Shown piece by piece: positions 1 through 24,933 of a stretch of 51,167 nt of DNA. Position numbers and translations under genes: made by a program. Location of the stretch: the NCBI GenBank assembly GCA_943704425.1, contig CALSCP010001696.1:21504-72670 (forward strand). The letters run 5' to 3'. The DNA is from Ministeria vibrans ATCC 50519 (lineage: Eukaryota > Protista > Filasterea). Each line of letters begins with the position of its first letter. The first letter of the stretch is position 1. The notes beneath the pieces were generated by a model that was not told where the DNA came from, searched no databases, and worked only from the letters and a program-made list of their open reading frames with translations.

Positions 1-348
1 GCATTAGAATCAAAAGCGCCGCTGAATCAACGGATCAGGAGGAGCGCTCGGTTGCGCTCCTGTTGGTGGCGAAGCGCCATTTGTAACTGCAAAATTAATA
101 AGAATAAGAAAAATATAATTAATAGAGAATCGAGAGTTGTACTCAATAAGACTTTTTACAAAACAAAAGCACGTTACAATAATTATAATGAAAAAGTAAA
201 TAAAATACCCACTAATAGTTTATAGTTTATAGTAGGAGTAATCATTTATTCGTATTATTGTGTATTATTATTTTACATCATTCCATTATGGGAGACATAG
301 CGTGCGTACAGAAATAATCAGAGAGAAAAAACAAACGAAAAATGTACA

Positions 349-1796
349 TCAGAAGAGGGTTTCGACAAGACGGTGGGTGGGGGGCCCGAGAGCAAGGGCG
401 AGATCGGCGCGGATGCAGTCGAGCACAAGAGACTCCCCGGCCTGCAGGCGCTGTGTGAGAGTGAAGGGCAGGCGTACGACGGGCTCGTCGTCAACAGCAA
501 TGACCTCCATGCCCGCGCGTATGCCCACCCTCCCGGCCGGGCCCTCCTTGTCCAGCTGTACCACTACATATCCCTCCAGCACTATCCCCGCCCACCCGTC
601 AGCGTTGGCCGTCACCCGGTGTGTCGAGTGCAGTGGTTCGCGGCGCAGTAGGTGCAAATTCAGCAGTCGCTCTCGTGCGTCCGTCTTCTCCGCCAGAAAC
701 CGCCACAGTGTCTCAAGTCGGTGTGTTGCCAATCGATTGTCCGACGCGCGCAGGTCCGCTCCGTCTTGTATGCAAAAGACTCGGTCTCCTCGTCGGACGC
801 CTGCAACATCCGCTGGCGAGTCAGGCTCCACGTGACGCACGTACAGTCCTTCAAGCTGATGTAATATAGTAATATATAAAAATGACATGATTGAGTTGCA
901 AAACAACACAAATCAATAAATAAAAAGAATACCGGTGAGTCTATGTCCTTTTGTTTGGCCTGAAAGCGAATGCCGCGCATGAGCAAGCCGATTGATTCGC
1001 CGGCAGGGGGCACCGCAATGCGCGTGATCAAAGGCAGCTCTATGACGCCCTGCTCGACTTTGTCTTTGAGGTCCGCCACAAGGCCCGTTAGTTTCCTGGG
1101 CGGCGTCGGATGGCTTTCGGGCAGCAGAGTATCGACGCTTGCCATGCTGGTGTGCGACCGGACCGACGACACCTCCAGGCGCTGTCTCGTCTGCGATTCC
1201 AACGACTCAAGAAGGTCGCAGAAGTTTCCTCCTTGTGACGCAGACGACATTAGCGACAGGTCGCTGTCCCGGCGCTGTACCGGCAGGTCGTCCTCCACAG
1301 CGGATCGGCCCGCCTCGAGAATCGACAGCGACAAGGCTACGTGCGCCAGAGGGTCACGTCAGTCGTCAGTGCGCATCGGGACAACACATTCCCCAATGCG
1401 GTGCCGCCGAAAAGTGCAACGCAAACACACAACAGCCGCGGAAAACGCAGATCGGGGGTAATACACAGTGGTGTGGGGCGCTCGTGAGGACCCACGAAGC
1501 CATGTTACAAAAAACGCAAAAGCAACCCAAAAAAAAAAAAAAAAAAAAAAAAAGAAGAGAGGAGAGAAATCGCCGATGGACAGAATTGCCTTACCACGCT
1601 CTAAGGATAGGTTTGGCGCCTGGTGGTGTGCTTGATCGGGGGTGTTCTGGCAGGGGTGCGTGTCCGTGCCGTCTGCTGTGCGCTCCGTCGTCCGCGATGG
1701 AGTCAAGGCCAGTGCTGTTGACGTCTCACTTTGGGTCGGGCGAATCGCCCGGCGCATCAGCCGTCTCATGCTGCTCTCTTTCTTCTTGCTCGACAT
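349..1796 (-). CDS. Tandem-PDZ domain protein (syntenin-like PDZ pair), about 3 exons (~1796-1595, 1336-933, 855-349)
   Basis: The spliced reading gives IGLLMRG...LEGLYVRHVEPDSPADVAGVRRGDRVF and GIVLEGYVVVQLDKEGPAGRVGIRAGMEVIAVD, both PDZ-type signatures. GT/AG sites lie at 932/856 and ~1594/1337. The 5' exon is less certain. Confidence 0.7.
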
Positions 1797-1956
1797 GTAA
1801 TGTCCACCCCTCCTCGTCTAAGCCCTCCACAAAGGCAGCGCAGGTTGAAAATTTAGTGCTCAATAGTCAATAGTCAAATTGAATGAATAGTTCCAATTTA
1901 CCTTTTCTTAAATATTTCACTTTCTTTTTTATACCTTTATCTTTTGTTTGTCACCA

Positions 1957-2525
1957 ATGAACGTTCGATCCGTCACTTCAGAGCCTGTTCCTTACCCTCT
2001 CGTTGGAAAGTGCGTGTGTGGCGCAGTGTCTGTGGAAGTTTTAGACAATCCAATGGGAACATACTTCTGTCACTGTACCAACTGCCAGGTATGCGCGATG
2101 CCTTCGTCCGCGTCCATGTTGTGAACCCCGCGCGCGTGCCGTGTCTCCTGTAGAAAGTGATGGCAGGACCTTTTGAGATGGGCGCAATTTTCACTGCAAA
2201 CAATGTCAAAGTGGTTGAGGGAGCAGACGCGATTACGCGCTTCAAAACGTCGCCTGGCTTTGAGCGATGCTTCTGCAAGGTGTGCGGGACGACCATTATG
2301 GGACAGGGTCTGGACGAGAAGATGCCGGTGACGGTGGTTTCAACCGCCTGCTTCGTTGACGCCGACACGCACACTGTCCCCTCCCAGCTGGCCCCCACAT
2401 CCCACCTCTACTACAACTCGCGCATCCTCGACGTGCACGACGACTTCCCCAAGTTCCGCGCCCTCGTCGTCGACGATGCTGGCGCGCTCCTCCAGCCAAT
2501 GACTCCTTCAGAAATCGAAAAGTAA
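1957..2525 (+). CDS. GFA/CENP-V (Mss4-like) zinc protein, 2 exons (1957-2088, 2154-2525)
   Basis: Exon 1 reads MNVRS...GKCVCGAV...YFCHCTNCQ. Exon 2 contains RCFCKVCGT and PTSHLYY. This is the CxC...CHCxxC...RxFCxxCG GFA pattern. The intron 2089-2153 (GT..AG) is phase 0. Confidence 0.85.
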
Positions 2526-2910
2526 ACAATGCGTTCTTTGTGTCTTAATCACCATCTACAGCAACACGACAATCGAAACGAACACATACTTGTGTGTGTA
2601 GAGCTGGCGTTGCTTCTATGCAGACAGAGCCAATGTTTCGCGCACACATACTTTTACTTTCTTTTATTCTTTCTCTTTCTCCATCGCTCTTTTTTCATCA
2701 CGCATACTCTCATTCTCACTCGCAAATACCAAAGTCAAATCTAATCAATTCCAAAACATCAAAAACACAACGGAACACGTCACACACAATGTTACATGAT
2801 AACAAAAAAACCCCCCAACCAAACACAAATCTCTCAAGTCATCCAAAAACACCCAAAAAAAAAGAAGAAAAAAAACTTTGACACACATGAAAAGAAGAAA
2901 AAGGGAGGAG

Positions 2911-5900
2911 TTAGTCGTCCTTAGGCGGAGCAGAGGAGCGAGGGCGATCAGCCTTGGCAGTCGAAGAGGGGCGGTTCGAGCGGCGGTGGGAACCGGAGCG
3001 GGCTCGGCCAGATGGGGCGTCGTCCTTAGTCGAGCCCGCCTCGCTGATGGAGCTGCTGCTGCGCTGGCGCCCCTCCGACACCGAGTTGCTGCGCGACCGC
3101 ACCACCACCTCACGTGTCTTCATCTTCTGCACTTCAATCCCAATCACTCCCTAGATAAAAATAGATCAGTCCAGTCCACTTGCAGTCGCGTTCCTCTTTT
3201 CTCCCCATCACTTGTTCTCTCTCTATCACGTATTATCGCTGTGTTCTTTTTCACACACACACACACACAGACACACATTTTCTCCCCATCACTTGTTCCC
3301 TTTCTATCACGTATCATCGCTGTGTTCTTTTTCACACACACACACACACACACACAGACACACACATAATTTCTCTCCATCACTTTGTTCTTTTTTCCCT
3401 TCGTTCTCTCGAAAACATATTGTGCACCCTCACTCCCCCTCTCATTGGCTCGATTTCCTTCTCTCTTACTGTCGGGATGAGGTCGTTGGCAGTCTTGGTC
3501 ATCTTGATTAGACCCTCCACCTGCGGTGCCATTGCCAGCGGCCGCTTGTCCTTGCGGTAGAACAGATACGCCCAAAACTTCTCAATTCCATACGTCTCCC
3601 CTAGAATTAAAACATCACAACAAAAAAAGAATGAATAAAGATAAAATGACAAGGTTTCGCCTCATTTGAGGGAAGGTACCAAAAGAAATGTCGAAAATGA
3701 CGTCGTCGTGAAACTGCGTGTAGATTTCCTCACGAAATTTCTTCTCAAGGCCATACGAGTAGAAGCGGAAGAGACACTCCAGTCCATACCTAAACGCAAA
3801 TCAAAGCAAAAAAATATATATTATTTAGCATAGTCCGCTTCTCTCTTCCTGTATGTGTAGTGGCGTATACCGATAGCCCCCAGCGGCATCATCCTTGGCC
3901 ACCGTGCGGAATTCCTTGAACATGTTGCGGTTGAAATTGTCGCGCAGGAAGAAGGACCAGAAGCGGAAGAGAGTGTTCATCTCTTGGGACTGGCCAACGC
4001 CCAGACGCTCACGCTCGCGCAGACACTTGACACGGTACTTGGTGTACTTGTGCTGCATGAAGCATTCCGACTTGAGCAACTCGTGGCTGGGGTGCTGGAA
4101 CTTGGACAGCGAATGGTTCGAGTCGAGCGATGCACTGGCGGCCTCCTGGCGCATTTTGAGCGAAAGGGGCGACGGATCCGACGGCGACGGCGACACACCC
4201 AGCTCGGCCGGATCGGTGTGCGGCGACAGGTTTTGCGACTCGTTGCTCATCACCCAGCCGACAGGCTGCTCCTTGACCGGGTTCTTGCCGTACTTAGTCT
4301 TCTTCTTTTTGCCGCCTGACATGGCCGCAGCTGCAGCCATGTTGGCGCCGGCGCCCGCCGGCACCGAGGTCGACAGCGACGACGCCGCTGACGTGTTCGC
4401 CCCACTATCCGACGCATTGGCGCCCGCCTTGGAAGGCAACGGGAAGAAACGCGGCGAGTCCTTGTTGGTGGTGCCACTCTTGGCCGCTCGCGCGGGCGAG
4501 CCACGCCCAATGGACATGCTTTTGCTCTGGTTCTTTTCGCCACGCAGTGCGCGAAATTCCGACTCGTTCACGGTAGCAACCTTGCGGAAGTCCTTCGAGT
4601 CAGACGGGTTCCAGTCCTCGACGTTGCGGCCGTAGTCGTCGTCGTCGGCATCGCGCGCGAGCAAGTCCTGCTCGTAAAAGTACAGACCGTCGTTGATCAT
4701 GCTGGCCCAATCGTCGCTGCGAGCGGAGCGTGACGTGTGTCCGCTCGTTCGGTCACGTCCTTCGTGTTTTGGCGCACGCGGTGGCGTCTGTGTGACGATA
4801 AGCAGCTTGGCGAGTGCCTCGTCGTCAATTTCACCGTCCGACTCGGACTCGTAGTCATCGTAGCGCAGATTGCGCTTGCTGCCCGCCGTATCAAAGTCGC
4901 CATTCGACCCGTCCTCAAACTGGAAGGCAAGGTCTTCGACATCGTCCGCGTCGACGTCGGCGTGACGGATGCCTTGTGGGGTCATGGTGGCACCCGACAT
5001 GGGCGACATGGCGGCCGCCTCAGCGGCATCCTGCGCACTAAACGACCGTGAGTTGGTGGTACGTCTGCGACGGCCCGACACGACCGGTGTCCAGTCGTCC
5101 TGGTGAAGTGGCTGGACGTCCGCAACCGGCGTATCTGGCTCAACCACAATTGAGGGCGCCTTGACGCTAGTGTTGGCGTTGACCGGAGGCGTGGGTGTCG
5201 CTGACTCGGCATCGTCTGCGCCGGTAACCGTGGGTGTCGTTGGAGTAGCGGGCACGGTGTTGTCGCCGGTAGCGAACACAATGGGCGCCGAGAGCTGACC
5301 TGACGCGGCGGCCACGAGACTGGGCACGACCGTGGGCGCACTCTGTGGGTTGAACTCAAAGGATGGCGCCGCAATGTTGAGTTTGCTCGACTGGAGAATG
5401 TCAGTGGTGACAGCCGTGTCGGGCGACGGCGCTGTGGGCGACGAGGCGCTCGGTGTCGCTGCTGAAGGAAGATATGACTTCCAGTTGACGCGCTTGCGCA
5501 CACGGTCACCAGTGACCTCAACGACAAGCGAGCCCTTGAGAGCGTCCGTAATGGAAATGGCGCCGCCATGAGACAAGGAGCGCACTCGGTTGAACTTGCT
5601 GATCACGGCAATGGGCAGGTAGCCCTGATCGTCCATCTGATTGCGCAAGTAGAGGTCGCGCTCGAGGTTCTCAATGCTAAAGTAGTACTCAATTTGGCGT
5701 CGAAGCGCCGCAAGCACCATAGCCTCCTCCTCGGCGGGCGACTGTGCGTAGTAAGCACCGGCGACCGCCATTTGCTGCTGTACATGCATTTGCTGTTGCA
5801 TGTGCTGGTACTGCTGTTGCAATGTCATGGGCGGCACGCCTGCGAGCAGGGGCCCGCCACGGAAGCCCGGCATCATCTCGAGCGGGAAACCCATTTGTTG

Positions 5901-6905
5901 CATGGGCTGCTGCTGTTGCTGCTGCTGCTGCTGTTGCATGTGCTGCTGCATCAGTGGAAGTGCGTGTCCATCGCCAGACTGGGACGTCGCGTCCGCACCC
6001 GAAGCATTGCCACCGCCACCACTGCCGCCACTGCGACCACCGTCGCCGCGACCCTCGCCGCGACCCTCCCGTCGCCCACCACCACCACTGTTGCCACGTC
6101 CACCGCCCGAGCGGCCACTGCCCGAACCTGCGCCCGAGCCTGAGCCGGAGCCCGAAGATGCACCACGGCCGCTGCGAGTGTTTCCAGAAGAGCCCGAGCG
6201 ACCACCACCACCACCACCACCACCAGCGGAGCCGCCACCGGACGAGCCAAAACGAGTGCTGCTGCCGGAGGTACCGCTGCGACCTCCTTCACCGCGCCAG
6301 TTGCTGCTTTTGGAGCCGCCACCGCCGCCCTCTCTCGAACTGTCCCCGTGACGGCGCTCTCGCCCACCAGCGCCACTTCGCCCGGACGAACCGCTCGTGG
6401 CGCTGTGCGAATTGCTGCCGGCACGGTCGCCCTCGTCATCGCCCGTGCCAAGAACCACCGATGGATCCAGCGGCTTGTACTTTCGCTTGCCGCCTTTGCG
6501 CGCACGCAAATCGGTGGATGCTGCACTTGACGAGGCGGGCGCGGCCGCTGACGCAGCGGGTGCGCTCGTGCTTGGCGACGCTTCGGCGGAATCTGTCAAT
6601 GGCGTTCCTGTTTCGCCTGGTGTCGCGGCCGACAGGCCTTGGGTCGGGGCAGACGCCAAGGTGGGCCACTGCGACGGGTCGACTGTACCGGACGGGCGGC
6701 TTGTCGAGGGAGCAGCGGCCGGGGGACGGGAATCCGCGTGTGGCGAAGAAGAATGAGTCTTTTTCCAGGGATTCTCGCGGGGCGGCTCAGACGCAACGGA
6801 AGGCGCCTCCGTTGAGTCGGCCCCACTCGATGGAGCGACGCTTGCCGCGGGGGGCGCACGAGGGTCGTCGGCGTGCCCGTCTTTCACGGCCACTGCGCTG
6901 TCCAT
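2911..6905 (-). CDS. LARP1: La-related protein 1 (La motif, PAM2-like motif, DM15 cap/TOP-binding domain), 4 exons (6905-3871, 3789-3680, 3600-3470, 3150-2911)
   Basis: La motif [21 protein letters not shown]...FNRV. PAM2-like [13 protein letters not shown]. The DM15 repeats HPSHELLK...[33 protein letters not shown] and [10 protein letters not shown] are joined in frame across GT-AG introns. Confidence 0.95.
3197..3390. repeat. Intronic tandem duplication (~81-bp unit x2 plus a partial copy) with (CA)n tracts
   Basis: TTTTCTCCCCATCACTTGTTC...ATCGCTGTGTTCTTTTTCACACAC occurs at 3197 and 3278, with a partial third copy near 3370. Confidence 0.85.
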
Positions 6906-7473
6906 CCTTTTTTTGATGTTTTTTTTTTCTTGCTCTTTTTTGGCTCTGCTTCTTTCTGATTCTTCGGCTTCTCCTCACAGGCGCGGCTATCAGGTATATC
7001 AATAGACAACAGACGAGTGGGGAGGGAAGAGAAACAGAAAAGAAATTCTTTTTTTTTTGGATTGATATTAATTATTTCATTTTCATTTCGGTGTCAATTC
7101 GCACGACGTACGTAAGAACACGCACCAGCAGTACCGGCGTGTGCCTAATCGGATGTCTGCGACACTAGATCGCTGCTTGGCGTGTGGCTGCGTGACTGTT
7201 TTTGTGCTTTTAACGAGGATGTCACCACGGCAAGGTAACTCGCGTAACGGTAACGCGACGTCCGACAGCCCCTGATCAGGTACCTTCCCACCCCCTACTT
7301 CTCAAAAAACCACTCCTGAGGCCCTCTAATGCCCCTAGTTCAGTGCCCTAGTCGTCGGTGGTCGGGTTTCTGGCCTGTAGAGGACAAAAACTTTTGTTGT
7401 TTAAAAAAAAAAAGCGACTTCGCTTCGCCACTAAATTATTTTCTTTTCATTACTCTTTTTAATTATTATTAAT

Positions 7474-7536
7474 TAATTAGGCGGTCTGGCTGTGTCTTCG
7501 TGTGGTGACTGTATCATTAATAAATGGGTTGTATTC
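7474..7536 (+). mobile_element. 5'-truncated non-LTR/SINE-like insertion (63 bp) nested in the transposon, with 14-bp TSD
   Basis: It is flanked by TAATTATTATTAAT at 7460-7473 and 7537-7550. The body AGGCGGTCTGGCTGTGTCTTCGYGTGGTGACTGTATCATTAATAAATGGGTTGTATTC matches 37803-37860 with one mismatch. Confidence 0.8.
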
Positions 7537-7584
7537 TAATTATTATTAATAATAATGTGATGATTATAATACTATTACAATTAT

Positions 7585-10500
7585 TTACAAATCAAGCAGC
7601 TGTTTTGGTTTGCGGGAACGCCCGGAATCTGTTGTGACGCAGCCTAACTGCTGAGCTGCAATCATTCGTGTGCGGTCGGCAGCAGCCGCACGGCTTTGTT
7701 CATGTCGCTGCCGCTGAGCTGCACGCTCAGACTGAAGCAGTTTACACACGGCCTCACGCGCGTCACCCAGCACCCTCTGCTGCTCGCGTGGTGGCATGCG
7801 CAACGCGACTGACGTGCGCTCAAATTGCACTGGACCAACTAGCATTGACAGCTCTATGACACTCTCGCATTCACCAACCTTCATATCCAGCAAAGCAGTG
7901 TCCTTCATTGCAATTGCCTCCTCGCCACGTTTCACGGCAATCGACCATGGCGCCACGTCGTCTTGTGCTTCGCCATCATGATCAGCGTCTTGCAAAAGCG
8001 CGTCCACATCCTCCTTGTCAAGATCTAGGCGGTACTCAAGCTTGAACGGAGCAAAGTTCAGCACAATCTTGTCCCGAATAGCACTTCCAGCGCCTTTAAA
8101 GCTGACGGAGGTAATGCGCTTCCGCAGCGTTCCACCATTCTTGCGGCTGAGAACGAGAAACATGTCGTGCACCCGGCCAAGTTGCACCATAAACACATAT
8201 CGCTCAGGAGCACGGGTATTGTCCATCGCCAACACAGCAACAGTGGACGAGCATAGGATGCGGTCGGGAGCCTCCTGCGTGGCACAGAGGCAAACTCTAG
8301 TCAGGCGATCACCGCTGCTAGTGCGCTCCTCTACGATCCGCTCCAGATGCCGTTTGCTGAAGCGAGCCACGAGGGTAGCTTTGGATTTCGTCCTCGTCCC
8401 ACTCGCGTCGTGGACAAACGGACTGTCGCCAACACTGCGCATGCGGCTAGAACCGGCACCAAAATCATCATCTTGTCCGGCAGCGTTATTTTTGACGAGC
8501 TTGTCAGAGTTGGAGGCGAGGATATTTTGTAAGAATGCGTGTCGTTCAAGCAGCTCATACGCTTCGGTGCTCAGTCCATCGACCGGATTGTCCACAGACT
8601 TCGTATCGGAAGTAAAATCTTTCGGCGCGTCTCCGCTCTCAACCTCGGCCTCGCACTCAATTTCAAGCTGCTGGTCGTATCCGAGTTCCTCCACTGGATC
8701 GAGCTCAGTGTGAGCAGGAATGTGGCTGGAGCGACCGAGTACAGTGGCGTCTGGCAACTCAGAGTCATCCAGCAACCCGTCAGTGTGAGGAGCGCTGGTT
8801 TTTGGTGGCCGTACAGTATCGGCCGGAGTTGAACGACTCTGAGCATCTGTCATCCCCGCCTCAATCTCGACGCCAAACCTCGACTTGTCAATCAGCACTT
8901 CCAGCAGTAGTTCGCGCACATGTTGCTGCTCCCCACGCACCGCGTCATCACACGCCATGATCCGTCTACACAGTTCGCTCGCCGTTCTCTCACCGACACG
9001 CCACGCTGCGCTAACCGTCGCAACGAAAGTGTCCACAGACAACTTGTTGTCGGTACGCTCGCGCTCCCACGCTGCGAGTCCTCCTTCGCAGCCAAAGACG
9101 CTCAGCTGTGCGTACAGCTTCTCCCAGAGCCCAGATTCGCCATGGTACACGTGACGCCGCTGGTGCGTAGAAGCTGTGGTTGGTGCGCTTGGCAGCGCCC
9201 GTGCCATGGCCTGACGGTTGTAAAGGCTGCCGAGAGCCATGGCTTCGCTCGCAGTGAGCGTGACACGACCACGCAAGCCTCCTCTGACGATGCCAAACAG
9301 CGCTTCCACGAGATCATCGCTGCACAAGCGGCTCATGTCAAGGTGTTGGAGAAGAAGTTCGGAGTTGCGGCATCGTACGAGGACACACAGGCGAAGAATG
9401 ATAGCAAGAGAGACTGCCTGGCGCATCTCTTCGAACGTTTGTGCGGTCAAAAAGTTGGCTGATCCCTTGAACAAGTCACCATTGCGCCACGTGTAGAGTA
9501 CCATGGCCACGAAACCGCAGCGGAAAGCGATAGCACGGTCGTTCATTCCACGTCGCATGAAAATGTCAATGAAGGCAGAGCACATCACGCCGTACATCGT
9601 GTAGCCAATAACATTGAAAGACGAAATGTCGTCCACGGGAGGCATACTAAGCAACACATACAAAAGAGGAGGAGAAAAGCTCCGCCACGACTGCGGGACA
9701 CTTTGTGCGTCACCCGAGCCAGGTAGCATGTCGCGCGTAACAACATGCATTGGGAGTTTGCGTACTGCTGAGAAGAGCTGGGAGAGCCCGCCACTCGCGA
9801 TCGAGCTAGCGACAATGTGCTCATCATGCACGCGGGCGACGTCGGTGTGATGGTCTGCCTTGGCTTGCGCCAGGTAGGCAAAATCACCCAGTCCACGCTC
9901 AAAGGAATAGAGCAAGCTGAGAAGACTAACGTCGACCTGGAAGTTGCTGCCAAAGCACAGAGGGTGTGACCGCCTCATCAAATTGCGCAGTCGTTTCACA
10001 ACGTGCTTGTGATCGGGAGCTTGAATCAGCCCGAGGCAGTCCTCAGCGTGCACAAGAACATCAACACCGCCCTCACGCAGGACACCCATCAGCTGGCGCA
10101 TCAGCGTTTGAGTGAGTTTCCCCATGCTGTCATCGCCACTGGAAGATAGTTGTGCTGGTGGTGGCCGGAGTAATTGCGGCTCAAACGCCATCGACGATGT
10201 CACTGCAGCTGGTGGCACACGCTGCGCCTGCAGCACTTTGTATAATTGAGATGCGCCATCGCCTGCCCACGAAATGATCGTCGCCACCCGAGCAAACTTT
10301 TCATTCCGCGTCAGCTGCGCCATCACCTTGTTCTTCACCTCCAGGTAGGTGTGAGAGGTCCACCTACCACACGTGAACAGCATGTGCAGTACCACGCCGC
10401 TCTGGTTGAAGATATCCTTGGAGTCGCGGCCGCCGCGCTGCCTCATCAACCCACCTCCCACAACCACCGGTACGTGCTGGTGAATAAGTGGCATGAGCAC

Positions 10501-12750
10501 GACTGGGACCATGCGCGTCACCAGCTTGTGATGATCAAGCCCAGCAAGAAGCGCGTCCAGGTCGTCTTCGTTGTCCGGCAGCTGTCGACAGCCGTCAAGA
10601 AGCTCAACGCCCAAGTCGCACCGTGCACCCTCTATATGTCCACATAGCCCAAGAAGAGAGAGGCGCCCTCCTGCATGGTGCTCGGCGCCACGAGGAGCAC
10701 GGTCTGACGCGTATACACTTGCGCGAGCAACAAGCATCCCTTCGTCAACACCAATGCTATATGGCAGAGTGGTTGACGACGGCAAGCTGAGCACATTCCG
10801 CATCTGCTCGACCTGAGCGACAATGATGTCAACTGCCCGGTCCACATTCAAATCGGAGGCTCCAACATCAAGACGGATGAGCCCGCGCCGAAACTGTATG
10901 ATAGTTGTGAGGTCTGTCATGCTGAAGAGCGTAGTTGCAAGGTGTTGCGCAACAGCACGGCCGCCAAAGTCCCACGCATCCGAGAGCAGCTCCTTCGCCT
11001 CCTCGATGTAGCGCACGCCGTTCGGTTTGCGTGTCGCATTCGCTTCTGCCATCATCTTGAACCGGTTGAACATGCGGGCTTTGCTCATCAGTGTGTCATG
11101 ATGCGTCGATGGCGTGGCAAACGAGCCCAGCAGCTCATCCTGGGCCTGCCTGGCGCGATAAGCTCGTTGACGCTCTTTGTTCAGCTTGCGCGCGTGCTCC
11201 TTCTTTGCCGACTCCTGCTTTTCATGCAAGGCTTTCAGCAGGTGCTGACTAGTCTCGTTCCCGCGCACGGTCGTTGCGTCAGAAGAAGAGCTCGCCGTCG
11301 AGGTCACCAGGGGTACCGCAGACGGCTGCTTGAAGAGGACGTTGATGCCGCGGGCAAGTGCACGAGAGTCAGCACACCGGTCGGCACGGTTGAGTAGTTG
11401 GCGGCAAGCGGAGCAAGACGTTGGTTGCTTCGCAAAGCGAGCGGGGAGAGTGCGCAAACAAGTCGCGGAAAAGACTTGAAACTGCACGAGCACTGGGTCC
11501 TCGCGCCACCATTCGACGACGGTCGCTCCATGAGGCAAGTGCGACACCACAGTGAACATCTTGCGCCCTTTTCCTGTCACGTAGTCGCTAGTCGTGCGGA
11601 ACGCGACGGCGATAGCATCGCGAGCGAGCCCCGGTGAATACGGTTTTGTCGCGGAGATGATGGCGTCGACGTCATAGAGGCCATTACATGTAACCACCCC
11701 TTTCGGTTTTTGCATGATAGCCAGTGGCGGAGCCGGAGCAGCTGGTGCATGAGCAGGAGGCCGTGGGGAAGCGGACGGCGTTGACGATTTCGTGAAGAAC
11801 GACTTGATCGACTTCATGTGCATTTTGGTGCTGCCACTGTCAGGGCGTAGCGCTGCCGTTGACGCGGCAGCACAGGCGTCGATGTGTCGGAAAAGATTGA
11901 CGACGTTGTTGATGGGGAGGAAGGCTTTCTTGCACATCTGACAAACAACATGGGTTGGGTCGTCGATGGCAACTTGAACCGGGAGCGGATCACAGAGGAG
12001 GCTCTGTTCAACCAACACTGTTGACGTCGAGGCGCGCGGCTGTGCATCTTGCCACACACGTACATTGCGACGGGATTCTTCAGTCAAAATGGCGGGTACG
12101 AGGACGTCGTCGATGGAGACGTCAAAGAGAGCGCGCACACGTTTGATCGCGGCCTCCCGTGCGGCAACGTCGGTTGGCGCTGGCACGGTGGCTGAACTTG
12201 TTGCAGACGTAGAGCTTGTCGCACCGGTGTCGGATGTCGACGTGGAAGCATAGTCGACACGGCGCCGCGTTCTTCGGTGAGCGCTTGGATGGAACTCCGC
12301 ACCATCGTCAAACCCATCGCTGTCGTCGTCGCCGCTGTCATCGTCATCGTCATCACGGTATCGCTTCTGTGTCGCGCCTGCAAGGGTCGCTTTTACGCGA
12401 ACCTCCAGTGTGCGCTCTAGCTTGACTGCGACCCTCACGTTGAAGTTCACAACGTCAGGAGAGCCTTGCTCCACTCCGTTGACGAAGAACGTCGTGCCCA
12501 CGACAACACTTGGTTCGAGCTTACGTTTAACACGCTCCAGCAGTTGCGAATGTGCGTCTTCATCGCTAACAAGTTCCTGAACGGTTGAAACATCGGTAGA
12601 GAGCCCGCGCTGGTCCACACTCTGTATGGTTAGGTTGATGAGCGCTACAAACGAGACACATGACAAAACGTAAATAAAAACACGCATAAACGCATACCCA
12701 GAAAAGGTTTCATCGTGCTGACCGACGTGACGGTACTGAGTTTGGTTCAC
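7585..12750 (-). CDS. Large P-element-like DDE transposase (~1,700 aa; true start uncertain, 5' end may be spliced)
   Basis: P-type motifs occur in the expected order: SIGVDEG (D at 10744-10746), SWAGDGAS (D at 10258-10260), PDHKHVVKRLRN (D-x2-H..K..RN), QSV..SWRSFS (Q.V..A...FS-like) and RLCSDDLVEALFGIVRG (E at 9304-9306). There is an N-terminal CxxC...HxxxC zinc finger. The ORF is uninterrupted. Confidence 0.88.
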   Translation of the reverse strand: MNQTQYRHVGQHDETFSGYAFMRVFIYVLSCVSFVALINLTIQSVDQRGLSTDVSTVQELVSDEDAHSQLLERVKRKLEPSVVVGTTFFVNGVEQGSPDVVNFNVRVAVKLERTLEVRVKATLAGATQKRYRDDDDDDSGDDDSDGFDDGAEFHPSAHRRTRRRVDYASTSTSDTGATSSTSATSSATVPAPTDVAAREAAIKRVRALFDVSIDDVLVPAILTEESRRNVRVWQDAQPRASTSTVLVEQSLLCDPLPVQVAIDDPTHVVCQMCKKAFLPINNVVNLFRHIDACAAASTAALRPDSGSTKMHMKSIKSFFTKSSTPSASPRPPAHAPAAPAPPLAIMQKPKGVVTCNGLYDVDAIISATKPYSPGLARDAIAVAFRTTSDYVTGKGRKMFTVVSHLPHGATVVEWWREDPVLVQFQVFSATCLRTLPARFAKQPTSCSACRQLLNRADRCADSRALARGINVLFKQPSAVPLVTSTASSSSDATTVRGNETSQHLLKALHEKQESAKKEHARKLNKERQRAYRARQAQDELLGSFATPSTHHDTLMSKARMFNRFKMMAEANATRKPNGVRYIEEAKELLSDAWDFGGRAVAQHLATTLFSMTDLTTIIQFRRGLIRLDVGASDLNVDRAVDIIVAQVEQMRNVLSLPSSTTLPYSIGVDEGMLVARASVYASDRAPRGAEHHAGGRLSLLGLCGHIEGARCDLGVELLDGCRQLPDNEDDLDALLAGLDHHKLVTRMVPVVLMPLIHQHVPVVVGGGLMRQRGGRDSKDIFNQSGVVLHMLFTCGRWTSHTYLEVKNKVMAQLTRNEKFARVATIISWAGDGASQLYKVLQAQRVPPAAVTSSMAFEPQLLRPPPAQLSSSGDDSMGKLTQTLMRQLMGVLREGGVDVLVHAEDCLGLIQAPDHKHVVKRLRNLMRRSHPLCFGSNFQVDVSLLSLLYSFERGLGDFAYLAQAKADHHTDVARVHDEHIVASSIASGGLSQLFSAVRKLPMHVVTRDMLPGSGDAQSVPQSWRSFSPPLLYVLLSMPPVDDISSFNVIGYTMYGVMCSAFIDIFMRRGMNDRAIAFRCGFVAMVLYTWRNGDLFKGSANFLTAQTFEEMRQAVSLAIILRLCVLVRCRNSELLLQHLDMSRLCSDDLVEALFGIVRGGLRGRVTLTASEAMALGSLYNRQAMARALPSAPTTASTHQRRHVYHGESGLWEKLYAQLSVFGCEGGLAAWERERTDNKLSVDTFVATVSAAWRVGERTASELCRRIMACDDAVRGEQQHVRELLLEVLIDKSRFGVEIEAGMTDAQSRSTPADTVRPPKTSAPHTDGLLDDSELPDATVLGRSSHIPAHTELDPVEELGYDQQLEIECEAEVESGDAPKDFTSDTKSVDNPVDGLSTEAYELLERHAFLQNILASNSDKLVKNNAAGQDDDFGAGSSRMRSVGDSPFVHDASGTRTKSKATLVARFSKRHLERIVEERTSSGDRLTRVCLCATQEAPDRILCSSTVAVLAMDNTRAPERYVFMVQLGRVHDMFLVLSRKNGGTLRKRITSVSFKGAGSAIRDKIVLNFAPFKLEYRLDLDKEDVDALLQDADHDGEAQDDVAPWSIAVKRGEEAIAMKDTALLDMKVGECESVIELSMLVGPVQFERTSVALRMPPREQQRVLGDAREAVCKLLQSERAAQRQRHEQSRAAAADRTRMIAAQQLGCVTTDSGRSRKPKQLLDL

Positions 12751-13155
12751 TGGCCTACCAGAGTCAATGCGTTAGAGAAAAAACAATTTTGAAGAAAGAA
12801 CTGGAAAGAAGTGGAGAAGGAAAAAAAAAATCGATAATGACTCAACAAAGACTGTGACTATATGATGTCGTTCGACCTAGTACACCTACTGGACCATAGA
12901 TCAGGGCGAATCAGGGCCAAAAACGTCCAAAAGAGAGAGTTTATTTTCCACTTTACTTAGTCGCGTAACGCTCCTCCGACAGCCTCCAGACACCCACCTC
13001 ACCCTATTAGTAGCTGTCACGCGTCGGAGGGCCGTTACGCGATTAATTATAGAGTTACCTTGCCGTGGATGTCACTTGATCATTAGATCGCCTCAGTTAA
13101 TCAGTTACACTAAAGAGTATTCACTAATACACTTTACTTATTTGCTTGCTTCACA

Positions 13156-13746: not shown

Positions 13747-13992
13747 AGAAGAGAGACTGATTGTGTTGTCGTCTCTTTCGCAGACCGATACCAGCAGCAG
13801 TTTGGCAGCGGCACAGCATTCAGCTACTTCCATGCGGAGGACGAGACGTCGTTCCAGCTCGTCGACACAACCAAGGTTCATCTTCCACTCTCTATCTCTG
13901 ATGTGTCTGGCACTTGGTCACTGTGTTTCTCCCTTCTCGCTCTCTCTCTCTCTGTCACTTTGTTTCTTTCTCTCTCTATTACTTTGTTTCTT

Positions 13993-14035
<43 letters not shown>

Positions 14036-16200: not shown

Positions 16201-17107
16201 ATGTCGTCTGACGCCGTCGACCTGGCCCCCCACGCAGAGCAGGGCGCAGGGGCAATGGACGTCGTCGAGTCGAATGAGCGCGTCGATGGCACGCCGAGTG
16301 CCGCCACGGCCACGGGTGCGCCTGCAAGTGCGGACGCGACTCCGGCAGGGCCCGCGCCGCCCCTGACGACGGTCAGCGTGATGAATCTGTCGCCGCTGTC
16401 GTCCGAATTGTCGGTGCGTTCGTTGCTCAAGCCGCTCGGGACCATCCTGCGGGTGCGGATGCTTCCGCCGCGTGCGTCGATGGGCGGCGCTGCGTCGGCG
16501 CTGGTTGCCTTTGAAGAGCAGGCGTCGGCGTCGCTGGCGCTGCTCCTCACCAACACCAACTTCATCGATCGCGCGCTCATCGTCAAAGCCGCCGACAAGC
16601 AGCTTGTCGAGGACACCCCGGCCATCCTCGCCAACAGCGGGCCCGCCGGCCTTGTCACTGACATGTTGCCTTCCACCTTGCCCAGTGAAGGTGTTCTTAA
16701 ATGACGCTCTCTTTGCTTTTTCTCTCCTCATTTTTTTTTCTTTTTTTTTTTCTTTTTGTGCGTCTGGCTTGTGCAGCAACGACGATCCACGAAGCAGCGA
16801 CGCTCATTACCACAGTGCCGTTTTCACCCGGGAGCGGTGTTCAGCATGTGGTGCCCCCTGTGCCACCGCGCGTGGACATGCGCACAGCAGAAGTGCCTCC
16901 AACGCCACCAAACATTGACCCGAATCGCGCAGAGGAGGTTCGTCGCACCGCGTACATTGGCAACCTGAGCAATTTTATTACGGCAGAAGGTAGGCAAGCA
17001 CTTTGCAAACGCACACGTTTGAATCCTTTCTCTCTACCACTTTGTTCTTTCTCTCTCTCTCTCTCTCTCTATCACTTTGTTCCTTCTCCTCTCTAAAACT
17101 CACTGTT

Positions 17108-17151
<44 letters not shown>

Positions 17152-17249
17152 AGAGCTTGTCAAGTACTTTTCCGGCTGTGGCAAAGTGGCGTTTTGCCGA
17201 CTATCGGGCGATATGACTCAGTCGACGCGGTTTGCCTTTGTGGAGTTTG
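16201..17249 (+). CDS. SREK1/SRSF11-like RRM splicing regulator (5' part; runs into assembly gap)
   Basis: RRM1 VSVMNLSP...LLLTNTNFIDRALIV. RRM2 EEVRRTAYIGNL...YFSGCGKVAFCRL...TRFAFVEF. Both are typical of the SREK1/SRSF11 family. Confidence 0.85.
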
Positions 17250-17951
17250 NNNNNNNNNNNNNNNNNNNNNNNNNNNNNNNNNNNNNNNNNNNNNNNNNNN
17301 NNNNNNNNNNNNNNNNNNNNNNNNNNNNNNNNNNNNNNNNNNNNNNNNNNNNNNNNNNNNNNNNNNNNNNNNNNNNNNNNNNNNNNNNNNNNNNNNNNNN
17401 NNNNNNNNNNNNNNNNNNNNNNNNNNNNNNNNNNNNNNNNNNNNNNNNNNNNNNNNNNNNNNNNNNNNNNNNNNNNNNNNNNNNNNNNNNNNNNNNNNNN
17501 NNNNNNNNNNNNNNNNNNNNNNNNNNNNNNNNNNNNNNNNNNNNNNNNNNNNNNNNNNNNNNNNNNNNNNNNNNNNNNNNNNNNNNNNNNNNNNNNNNNN
17601 NNNNNNNNNNNNNNNNNNNNNNNNNNNNNNNNNNNNNNNNNNNNNNNNNNNNNNNNNNNNNNNNNNNNNNNNNNNNNNNNNNNNNNNNNNNNNNNNNNNN
17701 NNNNNNNNNNNNNNNNNNNNNNNNNNNNNNNNNNNNNNNNNNNNNNNNNNNNNNNNNNNNNNNNNNNNNNNNNNNNNNNNNNNNNNNNNNNNNNNNNNNN
17801 NNNNNNNNNNNNNNNNNNNNNNNNNNNNNNNNNNNNNNNNNNNNNNNNNNNNNNNNNNNNNNNNNNNNNNNNNNNNNNNNNNNNNNNNNNNNNNNNNNNN
17901 NNNNNNNNNNNNNNNNNNNNNNNNNNNNNNNNNNNNNNNNNNNNNNNNNNN
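17250..17951. other. Assembly gap (N run)
   Basis: 702 consecutive Ns. The gap hides the 3' ends of two convergent genes. Confidence 1.
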
Positions 17952-18014
17952 ATTGATGAATGATCAATTATGAAATGATGAGTTGAGGTGTGTGTTTTGT
18001 TGTGGTTGGGTGTA

Positions 18015-19298
18015 CCGTGCATTGCACACATCGCACGAAACCTGTCCACATCCGCAACAGCGGAAGCACGTACGCCGGCCATTCCCTGCGCACGAATAGC
18101 ACGACTGTCGTTCCTGTCGCGTCTGGCCGTTCTACAAAGAGAAGAAAGTGGAATGCGAAGACGAAAGCAAAGAGAGAGAGAGAGAGAGAGAACGGGAGGT
18201 AAAAGCAATGAGTCGTCTGGTTGACTCAATCTCGTGGGTGCCTCTGCCTCTCGGCTTGACTTACTTGCGTGACGGAGCGCGTGACACGGCCTGAGCCGGA
18301 GCAGGTGCCGCAGCGGACGCGACCACGCCCATGGCATGTCCAGCAGCGAATGTAGCATCGCCCGTAGCAATTGTGGCAGGTTTTGACGACTGCCGTGTGC
18401 GGCACCTCCACTGCCTTGGACTCATTGCGAAACATCGCCGACGGTTCCACCACAATGTCCCATGGACCAGGCGCATAGCCGTTCTCGGGCCCGTCAATCG
18501 GTTGCATATGGTAGGGCTCGTACTTCCAGGCAGTGGAACGCGCCTCGGAAAATGTCACAAGCTCATAGTGGTAGGCAGTTGACGGATCAATCGAATTGAT
18601 CACCATGGTTTCCGCGGCCTTGGTGCCCCAGCAGCACTTGGCCTTGGCTGTAAATGCGAGTGTGGGTTGAGAGAACAAGTCAAGAGCGTGAGTAAGAGAA
18701 GGCTTGTAAGCAGTCGCATTTTGTGCACATACCATGAGCAATGATTGCTGTACGCACTTCTTCTTCGGTAAACATGCGAGGAGGAGCAAGCTGGTCGGTG
18801 CGCGGCGGCGGCTGCATGGATTCCTCGTACGACGGGGGTGGCACGTCGCTGCCGTCGAACCCCGCCTGCTCATACCCCTTCACCACGCCCTGAAACTCCC
18901 CCATCGAAGGCGCAGCGGCCGACGGTGCTTGCGCATTCGAGTTCTCCAGCACATCGTCAGAGGGCATCTCTCCCTCGTAGCGAGGGACCTGCACACAACG
19001 ATCCATTGAAATGAGGGGGGAATTTTTCCGGTTGAGTACACACGGGAAGAGCAGCGTACCGCCGATTGGCCCGGCGGCGGCGCCTGTGGCGGGTAACCCT
19101 GCTGCTGTTGCTGCTGCGGCGGGTATCCTTGCTGTTGCTGCGGTGCATAGCCCGCTTGAGGAGCATACGATTGTTGGTAACTTTGCTGCTCGAAATAAAA
19201 ACGAAACAGCGTATGAAAATGAGTTAGCAAAGGACAGGTGTTGCGGGAGATGCCGGGTGTTTGGTCTATATGTGGAGATTAAGCACCTTTTCAGACAT
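18015..19298 (-). CDS. SSUH2: SSUH2 homolog (DnaJ-like CxxCxGxG repeats; 3' end lost in gap)
   Basis: CCWGTKAA...YHYELVTFSEARSTAWKYEPY...DGPENGYAPGPWDI...VPHTAVVKTCHNCYGRC...CWTCHGRG...CGTCSGSG, plus a further exon with CYSCAGNG..CFRCCGCG. The N-terminus is Q/P/Y-rich. Confidence 0.85.
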
Positions 19299-21232: not shown

Positions 21233-21909
21233 TCAACTCCGCCCGATTCCTTCTGGCGACGACGCCTGGCTCAGTAACCGCCGGGCCTGCGCCAAGACCT
21301 GGTCGGGCGTGCAGCCGTCGGTGGCAATCCAATGAGAGTGCGCCACCACCATGCGATCCGTTTCATCCGCCTGAGGCAACACCACGGATGAGTAGTAGCC
21401 GGGCGGGTCGGGCTCACCGCCGTCGTTGTCCTTGGCACGCCGTCGAGCGAGGAGAGTCTCTAGACGGTGTGGGCGTCGAAGGCGGATGAGCAGCTCCATC
21501 TTGTCCAGCAGCTGTGGAAAGTGCGGCAAGAGGTGTCCTAATGGGTGAAGGAGCGTCAACAGCACGGCAACACACTGCGCGAGGGCTACCTTCGACGATG
21601 ACGAGCGCGGCGCCATCCTCAGACGCGCGTGCCAGGGCCACGAGCACCGCGTCGACGGCGATGGCGTCGGGATGGTCCCAGCGCACATCGCCCGTCGCCG
21701 CCACCGGCACCGCTGCAAGGTCCGTCTGCAGACGAGAGACAAGTCACACTGCCGTCGCACGCCTGCGCCGGCTTCCGCACCTTGTAGTAGTCATCTTGGT
21801 GCACAATGTGGACTTGTCCGTCAAAGCATTGGCTCAAATTTCGAGCCAATGTTGATTTTCCCGTGCACGACGCTCCTGCTATGCCTACGACGCGAACACG
21901 AGCTGACAT
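21233..21909 (-). CDS. Nicotinamide riboside kinase/uridine kinase-like P-loop kinase (about 3 exons)
   Basis: VVGIAGASCTGKSTLA (Walker A), IVHQDDYYK, WDHPDAI, VIVEG, ARRRA and DPPGYYSSVV. These match NRK-family motifs. Confidence 0.8.

Positions 21910-22325: not shown

Positions 22326-22394
<69 letters not shown>

Positions 22395-24834: not shown

Positions 24835-24933
<99 letters not shown>

Follow-up and report, generated by a model that had tools for sequence, protein, structure and literature searches.

A structurally complete cut-and-paste transposon in Ministeria vibrans, probably a deep-branching member of the P superfamily

A stretch of 51,167 nucleotides from the filasterean Ministeria vibrans ATCC 50519 (positions 21,504–72,670 of contig CALSCP010001696.1, assembly GCA_943704425.1; hereafter, the window) carries a structurally complete cut-and-paste transposon, which spans window positions 7226–13067 (5842 bp). 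We read it as an autonomous class II element of a deep-branching P-superfamily lineage that is still competent to move, and assign this reading a probability of roughly 0.6. Placement in the superfamily is supported by the predicted fold of the transposase, by a transitive link through sequence profiles and Pfam models, and by an 8-bp target site duplication (TSD). To call the element a new and very divergent member of the known P superfamily is essentially right. Its ends, including the terminal inverted repeats (TIRs), are arranged as follows:

7218..7225, no strand: left TSD copy, GATGTCAC, read directly from the sequence
7226..7241, plus strand: left TIR of 16 nucleotides (nt), CACGGCAAGGTAACTC, on the 3' side relative to the transposase gene
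7242..7269, plus strand: left subterminal motifs GCGTAACG and TCCGACAGC, abutting the TIR; candidate transposase-binding sites
12951..13052, no strand: right subterminal region, a 30-nt imperfect inverted repeat with GCGTAACG at 12963 and 13033 and TCCGACAGC at 12975
13052..13067, minus strand: right TIR of 16 nt, on the 5' side of the transposase gene
13068..13075, no strand: right TSD copy, GATGTCAC, read directly from the sequence

The right TIR is the exact reverse complement of CACGGCAAGGTAACTC, and the two TSD copies are identical, as an earlier note on this DNA had claimed. The same note had cautioned that the ends could also be read as a 17-bp TIR with a 6-bp TSD. The longer complementarity is real, in that a repeat finder counts 17 complementary nt when the flanking C/G is included, but it arises from the first letter (G) and the last letter (C) of the TSD. 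Two independent solo ends from other parts of the genome (see below) have T or G, and not C, immediately outside their CACGG/TACGG terminus, an observation in favour of reading the ends as a TIR of 16 nt and a TSD of 8 bp and not as 17 + 6. The P superfamily is expected to produce TSDs of 7–8 bp, and the length found at this single insertion agrees with that expectation.

TIRs accompanied at both ends by internal motifs of the binding type, with unequal spacing, are a further P-superfamily feature that can be read from the sequence here: the subterminal motifs lie 10 nt from the TIR on the right and 0 nt on the left. Three of the four GCGTAACG sites in the window fall within about 105 nt of the element ends. 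We regard GCGTAACG and TCCGACAGC as candidate binding sites of the transposase.

Could the inverted and flanking direct repeats have fallen by chance around an ordinary host gene? Apart from the single-copy status of the element, nothing points that way, and we consider the idea extremely improbable. Among the listed inverted repeats of at least 14 nt in the window, only the TIR of the element is flanked by a direct repeat of more than 4 bp, and the remaining ones are microsatellites. Shuffled versions of the window (n = 30) gave 0–6 inverted 14-mer pairs each, with nothing comparable to an inverted repeat plus TSD. Related termini at three other loci and the transposase fold of the encoded protein also argue against coincidence.

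The element is filled largely by one open reading frame (ORF) on the minus strand, the uninterrupted frame of about 5.1 kb that the earlier note had reported. The first in-frame ATG is codon 22 (12685–12687), giving a protein of about 1700 amino acids (aa). The frame and the recognizable parts of its product are:

7585..12750, minus strand: transposase ORF, open for 1721 codons plus stop
11872..11943, minus strand: candidate C2HC zinc finger (C270, C273, H289, C293; C-x2-C-x15-H-x3-C), its function assigned by inference
10885..11013, minus strand: candidate helix-turn-helix (HTH) region, residues about 580–622, with the pattern RY..E.K...GG...L...T shared with proteins P0006 and P0007 (see below) and helices in the model
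9181..10773, minus strand: RNase H-like catalytic core, residues about 660–1190, split by an all-helical insertion domain of about 230 aa
10744-10746, minus strand: D669 (SIGVDEG), catalytic column
10258-10260, minus strand: D831 (WAGDGAS), catalytic column
10003-10014, minus strand: D913 and H916, in the block D913-x2-H916..K919-R920..N923
9304-9306, minus strand: E1149, in the motif E1149..F1152..R1156
8293..8433, minus strand: conserved C-terminal motif SPF..K.K..L....S.DRLTRV, residues about 1440–1486

These residues follow the order D, D, D-x2-H, E proposed in the earlier note. The candidate C2HC finger occupies the N-terminal place where P transposase and THAP9 carry a THAP domain; it has a CxxC..H..H counterpart in the N-terminal ORF of a paralogous element (described below), and that ORF and the N-terminal region of the window protein also share a [ST]C[ST]AC..LL motif. 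The C-terminal motif (K.K..L...S.DRL.RV) is common to the window protein, the three genome paralogues that keep the region and a family of insect proteins. It has no match in Pfam or the Atlas, and the C-terminal 340 aa gave no usable Atlas match. At its 5' end the ORF contains a possible 53-nt GT..AG intron (12645–12697), the removal of which puts an upstream ATG (12711–12713) in frame; plain initiation at codon 22 is the alternative.

An AlphaFold model of residues 560–1290 of the window protein, built from an 80-sequence alignment, had a predicted local distance difference test score (pLDDT) of 69, with 80–93 in the core, and a predicted template modelling (TM) score of 0.72. In Foldseek, the best matches of the model were the two Drosophila P transposase structures (6p5a_A, E 7e-7; 6pe2_A, E 1.2e-6; probability 1.0, target TM 0.63), and the next matches had E of 1e-2 or worse. 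VIA-align superposed the model on 6p5a_A with Z 20.1 and a root-mean-square deviation (rmsd) of 3.8 Å over 411 of 442 residues (chain residues 136–569), at 12% identity in the structural alignment. The corresponding values were far poorer for Transib (Foldseek E about 6e-2 or worse; VIA-align Z 10.2), RAG1 (E about 1e-2 or worse; Z 9.6) and the hAT transposase Hermes (E about 4e-2; Z 8.3 or less, rmsd >7 Å). The superfamily placement put forward in the earlier note, which had also proposed a comparison with Drosophila P transposase, is supported by a Z of 20.1 against at most 10.2 for other transposases, together with the transitive profile and Pfam link and the 8-bp TSD.

In its predicted secondary structure, too, the core is consistent with an RNase H fold: D669 follows the first core strand, D831 follows a strand at model residues 264–271 and E1149 lies in a helix behind the helical insertion of about 230 aa. 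An RNase H core of the DDE type with a large helical insertion domain and a P-like fold is accordingly present in the model. Upstream of it, the helical segment 580–622 is a candidate HTH; the match to 6p5a_A begins at chain residue 136. As modelled, core residues about 580–1190 have the P-transposase architecture, in which this putative HTH precedes an RNase H fold interrupted by the helical insertion.

At the sequence level, the link to the P superfamily runs through intermediates. A profile of the cores of the five family members in the genome (A2), searched against 1.84 billion (1.84e9) representative proteins, retrieved 8 proteins only: the family itself, P0007 (a metagenomic protein of 1166 aa, on a contig in which no TIRs were seen), P0008 (a fragment of 198 aa) and P0006. 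Together with the failure to find a Pfam or PDB-sequence match, this result strongly supports the earlier description of the family as divergent. P0006, matched by A2 with E 3.5e-5 in hmmsearch, heads an insect family of >120 mostly unannotated proteins from beetles, thrips and aphids (e.g. Photinus pyralis LOC116175142). An hhalign comparison of A2 with this family gave a probability of 95.3% (E 2.1e-8). The 202 aligned columns begin at the D-x2-H block and end at the catalytic Glu; looser settings extended them to the second Asp.

Three of the 28 scanned members of the insect family pass the curated Pfam cut-offs of PF12017 or PF21787: P0047 (28.4 bits) and P0053 (26.8 bits) for PF12017, the P-element HTH (cut-off 23 bits), and P0057 (28.9) for PF21787, the N-terminal part of the TNP-like RNase H (cut-off 24.6). 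The PF12017 matches fall at the place equivalent to the HTH region of the window protein. The Pfam models of the P family are reached transitively, through insect relatives only. In the 80-sequence alignment, in which 72 rows are the insect family, the consensus residue is kept in 71/71 rows for D669, 76/78 for D831, 77/78 for D913, 78/78 for H916, 77/77 for E1149, 74/77 for F1152 and 76/77 for R1156, and the window protein has it at all near-invariant catalytic columns. With the ORF open, the D/D/E columns occupied, and the TIRs and TSD perfect, the element deserves the word 'intact' used for it earlier. Protein language-model features agree with this placement, with P/THAP9-like clusters at 0.93, the top neighbours being unannotated basidiomycete clusters (0.95–0.96).

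Affiliation with another superfamily that carries the C/DxxH motif, or with an unnamed sister lineage, has to be weighed against this evidence; hAT is the leading candidate, and Kolobok, MuDR and Dada are further ones. The motif is common to five superfamilies (PMC9587614), the window protein lacks a direct Pfam P-family match, and its finger is of the C2HC (BED-like) kind and not a THAP domain. hAT elements such as Hermes also make 8-bp TSDs and have short TIRs and an RNase H fold with a helical insertion, and BED-type fingers occur in many of them. Nevertheless, the model matches Hermes far less well than P transposase, and Pfam detected no hAT dimerisation domain (PF05699) in the window protein. 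Kolobok shares the C/DxxH motif and is widespread among protists, but its TSD is the 4-bp TTAA and its termini are RR/YY (PMC9587614), as opposed to an 8-bp TSD and a CACGG terminus in the window. The fold itself does not speak against Kolobok or Dada, because no structure has been solved for either; it is TSD length and fold in combination that discriminate, given the TTAA duplications of Kolobok and the poor match of Hermes. With insect relatives that pass Pfam P-family models, we judge affiliation with another superfamily improbable.

Comparison with the Drosophila P element shows what the lineage has kept and what sets it apart. Both have an 8-bp TSD, termini beginning with CA and subterminal motifs unequally spaced at the two ends; the binding sites of P are asymmetric in this way (PMC7776569). 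In both transposases (6P5A/6PE2 for P) a large helical insertion interrupts the RNase H fold, which is preceded by an HTH (putative in the window protein), and both have the D, D, E residues and the D-x2-H..K..RN block. In contrast, the window protein has about 1700 aa to the 751 of P, and a C2HC finger in place of THAP; its first and second catalytic Asp are 162 aa apart, whereas those of P (D230, D303; PMC7776569) are separated by 73 aa, and its C-terminal ~430 aa include a conserved motif of their own. At 16 nt the TIRs are shorter than the 31-nt TIRs of P, the main ORF is essentially intronless, and a sequence-level match to P is lacking. THAP domains are restricted to animals (PMC7776569), so that THAP as a criterion probably defines the animal branch only.

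The domesticated human THAP9 shares the architecture of the superfamily (PMC7776569, PMC8230255), and THAP9-like clusters are among the language-model neighbours of the window protein; THAP9, however, carries a THAP domain and lacks TIRs and a TSD, whereas the window element keeps both perfect. The closest family detectable by sequence is that of P0006, which has the HTH-region pattern, the D/D/DxxH/E blocks and the C-terminal motif in common with the window protein but differs in its low identity (13–19%) and in protein length (500–870 aa, without the long N-terminal region).

Within the genome assembly (29.7 Mb in 2860 contigs, with introns and genes such as LARP1, eIF3d-like, an ArfGAP-PH-ankyrin protein and FERRY subunit 3), the window element is accompanied by nucleotide-level relics and by more distant paralogues. 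The copy and miniature inverted-repeat transposable element (MITE) search suggested in the earlier note was partly productive: the TIR (one mismatch allowed) and a TIR-plus-subterminal pattern matched the window copy and solo ends only, yielding three degenerate solo ends but no MITEs or further full copies. No second left end was found in the genome. At the protein level the family has exactly five members, the window copy and four paralogues of 25–32% identity, none of which matches a Pfam family. Two of the paralogues are each encoded by a separate single-copy element of about 5.83 kb, which also contains a same-strand ORF upstream of the transposase. The relics and these two elements are:

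C713:55231-55307: degenerate solo right end, 84% identity over 76 nt
C2859:3499-3724: degenerate solo right end, 67% identity over about 230 nt
C1787:5062-5148: degenerate solo right end, 93% identity over 87 nt
102-5930 of slice C2215:1-9000: paralogous element with 25-nt TIRs of 88% identity
3966-9797 of slice C1468:3000-12904: paralogous element of 5832 bp with perfect 19-nt TIRs

Two of the three solo right ends keep the terminus (TACGG.., CACGG..) and the subterminal CGCGTAACGG..TCCGAC, and neither a partner TIR nor any coding sequence turned up for any of the three in the roughly 8–16 kb searched. These degenerate ends indicate that the family was mobile in the past. The termini of the C2215 and C1468 elements have a CGAAGTG core in common. 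Neither element has a direct repeat of at least 6 bp within 20 nt of its inverted repeats, and the paralogues therefore neither support nor contradict the 8-bp rule.

A transposase of the C2215 type is also present on a Logan contig of SRR23274242 (5073 nt), on which three same-strand ORFs (3–1550, 1641–2321 and 2472–4997; 515, 226 and 841 aa) are separated by gaps of 90 and 150 nt that are probably two short introns. The genome copy of this transposase has one TAA inside the profile match.

A second dataset bears on the recent history of the window element. A Logan contig of SRR23272332 (5560 nt) corresponds to window positions 7508–13067 at 99.93% identity, with the ORF intact and four differences (11047, 11295, 11296 and 12090). 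On the right it stops exactly at the last, outer base of the TIR, and on the left it breaks off 30 nt into a dispersed repeat. Logan assemblies use k = 31, and a contig ending 30 nt into a repeat is what would be expected of a graph entering shared sequence. As a suggestion only, the stop at the TIR tip may mean that the terminus is joined to more than one flank in that sample; a coverage break is a possible alternative. Exact-protein look-ups of the flanking ORFs in public assemblies gave no match.

The dispersed repeat is a nested 63-bp retroposon-like fragment (7474..7536, plus strand; core about 7479–7537, ~59 nt, with AATAAA) located in the 3' non-coding part of the element, after the stop codon and before the left TIR. 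Dozens of copies of its core, 80–97% identical and each followed by an ATT/TTC microsatellite tail, are scattered through the genome, some with additional common sequence in front. The fragment looks like the 3' end of a retroposon without long terminal repeats or of a short interspersed element. A 14-nt AT-rich direct repeat, TAATTATTATTAAT, flanks it (7460–7473 and 7537–7550); this apparent TSD of the fragment could instead be part of the tail.

From its sequence, the element looks competent to move, having an open frame, perfect TIRs and TSD, and conserved catalytic columns. The earlier note had called it young and possibly active. The undecayed TIRs, TSD and ORF agree with this, but activity is an inference, and recent activity of the window copy is unproven in view of one full copy, the nested fragment and the absence from the assembly of the empty site that the note had suggested looking for. 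A different history would be that the element is of P type by descent and immobile, either as a single-copy relic whose frame is still open or as a gene nearing co-option by the host in the manner of THAP9. One full copy in 29.7 Mb without a second left end, remaining traces that are degenerate solo ends of 67–93% identity, a nested fragment that implies some residence time and the presence of an insertion-like sequence at 99.93% identity in the other dataset all fit such a history. It accords less well with the perfection of both the 16-nt TIRs and the 8-bp TSD, which co-opted transposase genes normally lose, with the retention of subterminal motifs at both ends, and with the Logan contig that stops at the TIR tip, suggesting more than one junction in the sample. 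On balance, we think immobility unlikely, though it is to be taken seriously.

Several observations weigh against reading the element as a competent P-superfamily transposon. Some of them concern its placement. The whole window protein and its N- and C-terminal parts matched 0 Pfam families at E ≤ 1, including the P-family models PF12017, PF21787, PF21788, PF21789 and PF12596 and, among zinc-binding domains, THAP and BED; genome scans with PF21787 and PF21789 gave no match at or near the element. PDB sequences were matched neither by the single protein nor by profiles A1 and A5, and two word-index searches found the protein itself only, once, in a Logan assembly. The fold evidence is not independent of the sequence link, because the insect family makes up 72 of the 80 rows in the alignment behind the model; a model from the 11 closest sequences alone reached a pLDDT of 41 and was not used. 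Low-confidence loops fill the wide interval between the first and second catalytic Asp, and the TSD of the full-length family is known from one insertion only.

The other observations concern competence. There is a single full copy in the assembly, and what else is left of the family consists of old fragments. No empty allele was found in the assembly, in which both flanks are unique and contiguous only with the element. The 3' non-coding part has received the retroposon fragment, and the four differences from the SRR23272332 contig, 2 synonymous and 2 non-synonymous (I221F, A486S), give no sign of selection.

If the element is a competent P-type transposon, its mobilization can be pictured as follows. 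The N-terminal zinc finger or fingers and the HTH would bind the subterminal motifs GCGTAACG and TCCGACAGC and the 16-nt TIRs, and the transposase would pair the two element ends. The DDE site would then excise the element and join its 3' ends to target strands 8 bp apart, and gap repair would produce the duplication of GATGTCAC. By analogy with P transposase, which uses a GTP cofactor and cleaves the donor with a 17-nt stagger (PMC7776569), the insertion domain may bind a nucleotide cofactor.

The insertion occupies a short divergent promoter region, flanked by a LARP1-like gene, whose start codon is 320 bp downstream of it, and by an eIF3d-like gene. P elements prefer promoters as targets, and an insertion into a promoter region would fit this preference by analogy, as judged from one site.

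Elsewhere in the window, long CT/GA microsatellites occur on both strands over ~11 kb (13940–14032, 17049–17143, 18171–18192, 22329–22392 and 24837–24930), and the 1-kb bin 17001–18000 has a G + C content of only 13%.

Much is understood about P-type transposons in Drosophila, and records from outside the animals are patchy; the fungal P-type records cited, for instance, are from Allomyces and rust fungi only (PMC5751038). Tentatively, and with more doubt than we attach to the placement of the element itself, the window element, its four paralogues, the two metagenomic proteins and the insect family may together form an unrecognized deep P-like clade that is for the most part overlooked by Pfam and that is defined by a non-THAP zinc-finger N-terminus and the C-terminal K.K..L...S.DRL.RV module, with the window copy active. 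Nothing known about transposition is overturned by these results. What they add is a lineage that neither Pfam nor ordinary sequence searches detect and that keeps the P fold in a protein of more than double the mass of P transposase, with a different putative DNA-binding module and an additional conserved C-terminal motif shared with insects. The lineage also offers a starting point for annotating the many insect proteins now labelled 'uncharacterised'. Should the window copy be active, it would be a candidate low-copy transposon tool for its host. The element extends the known range and domain plasticity of the P superfamily.

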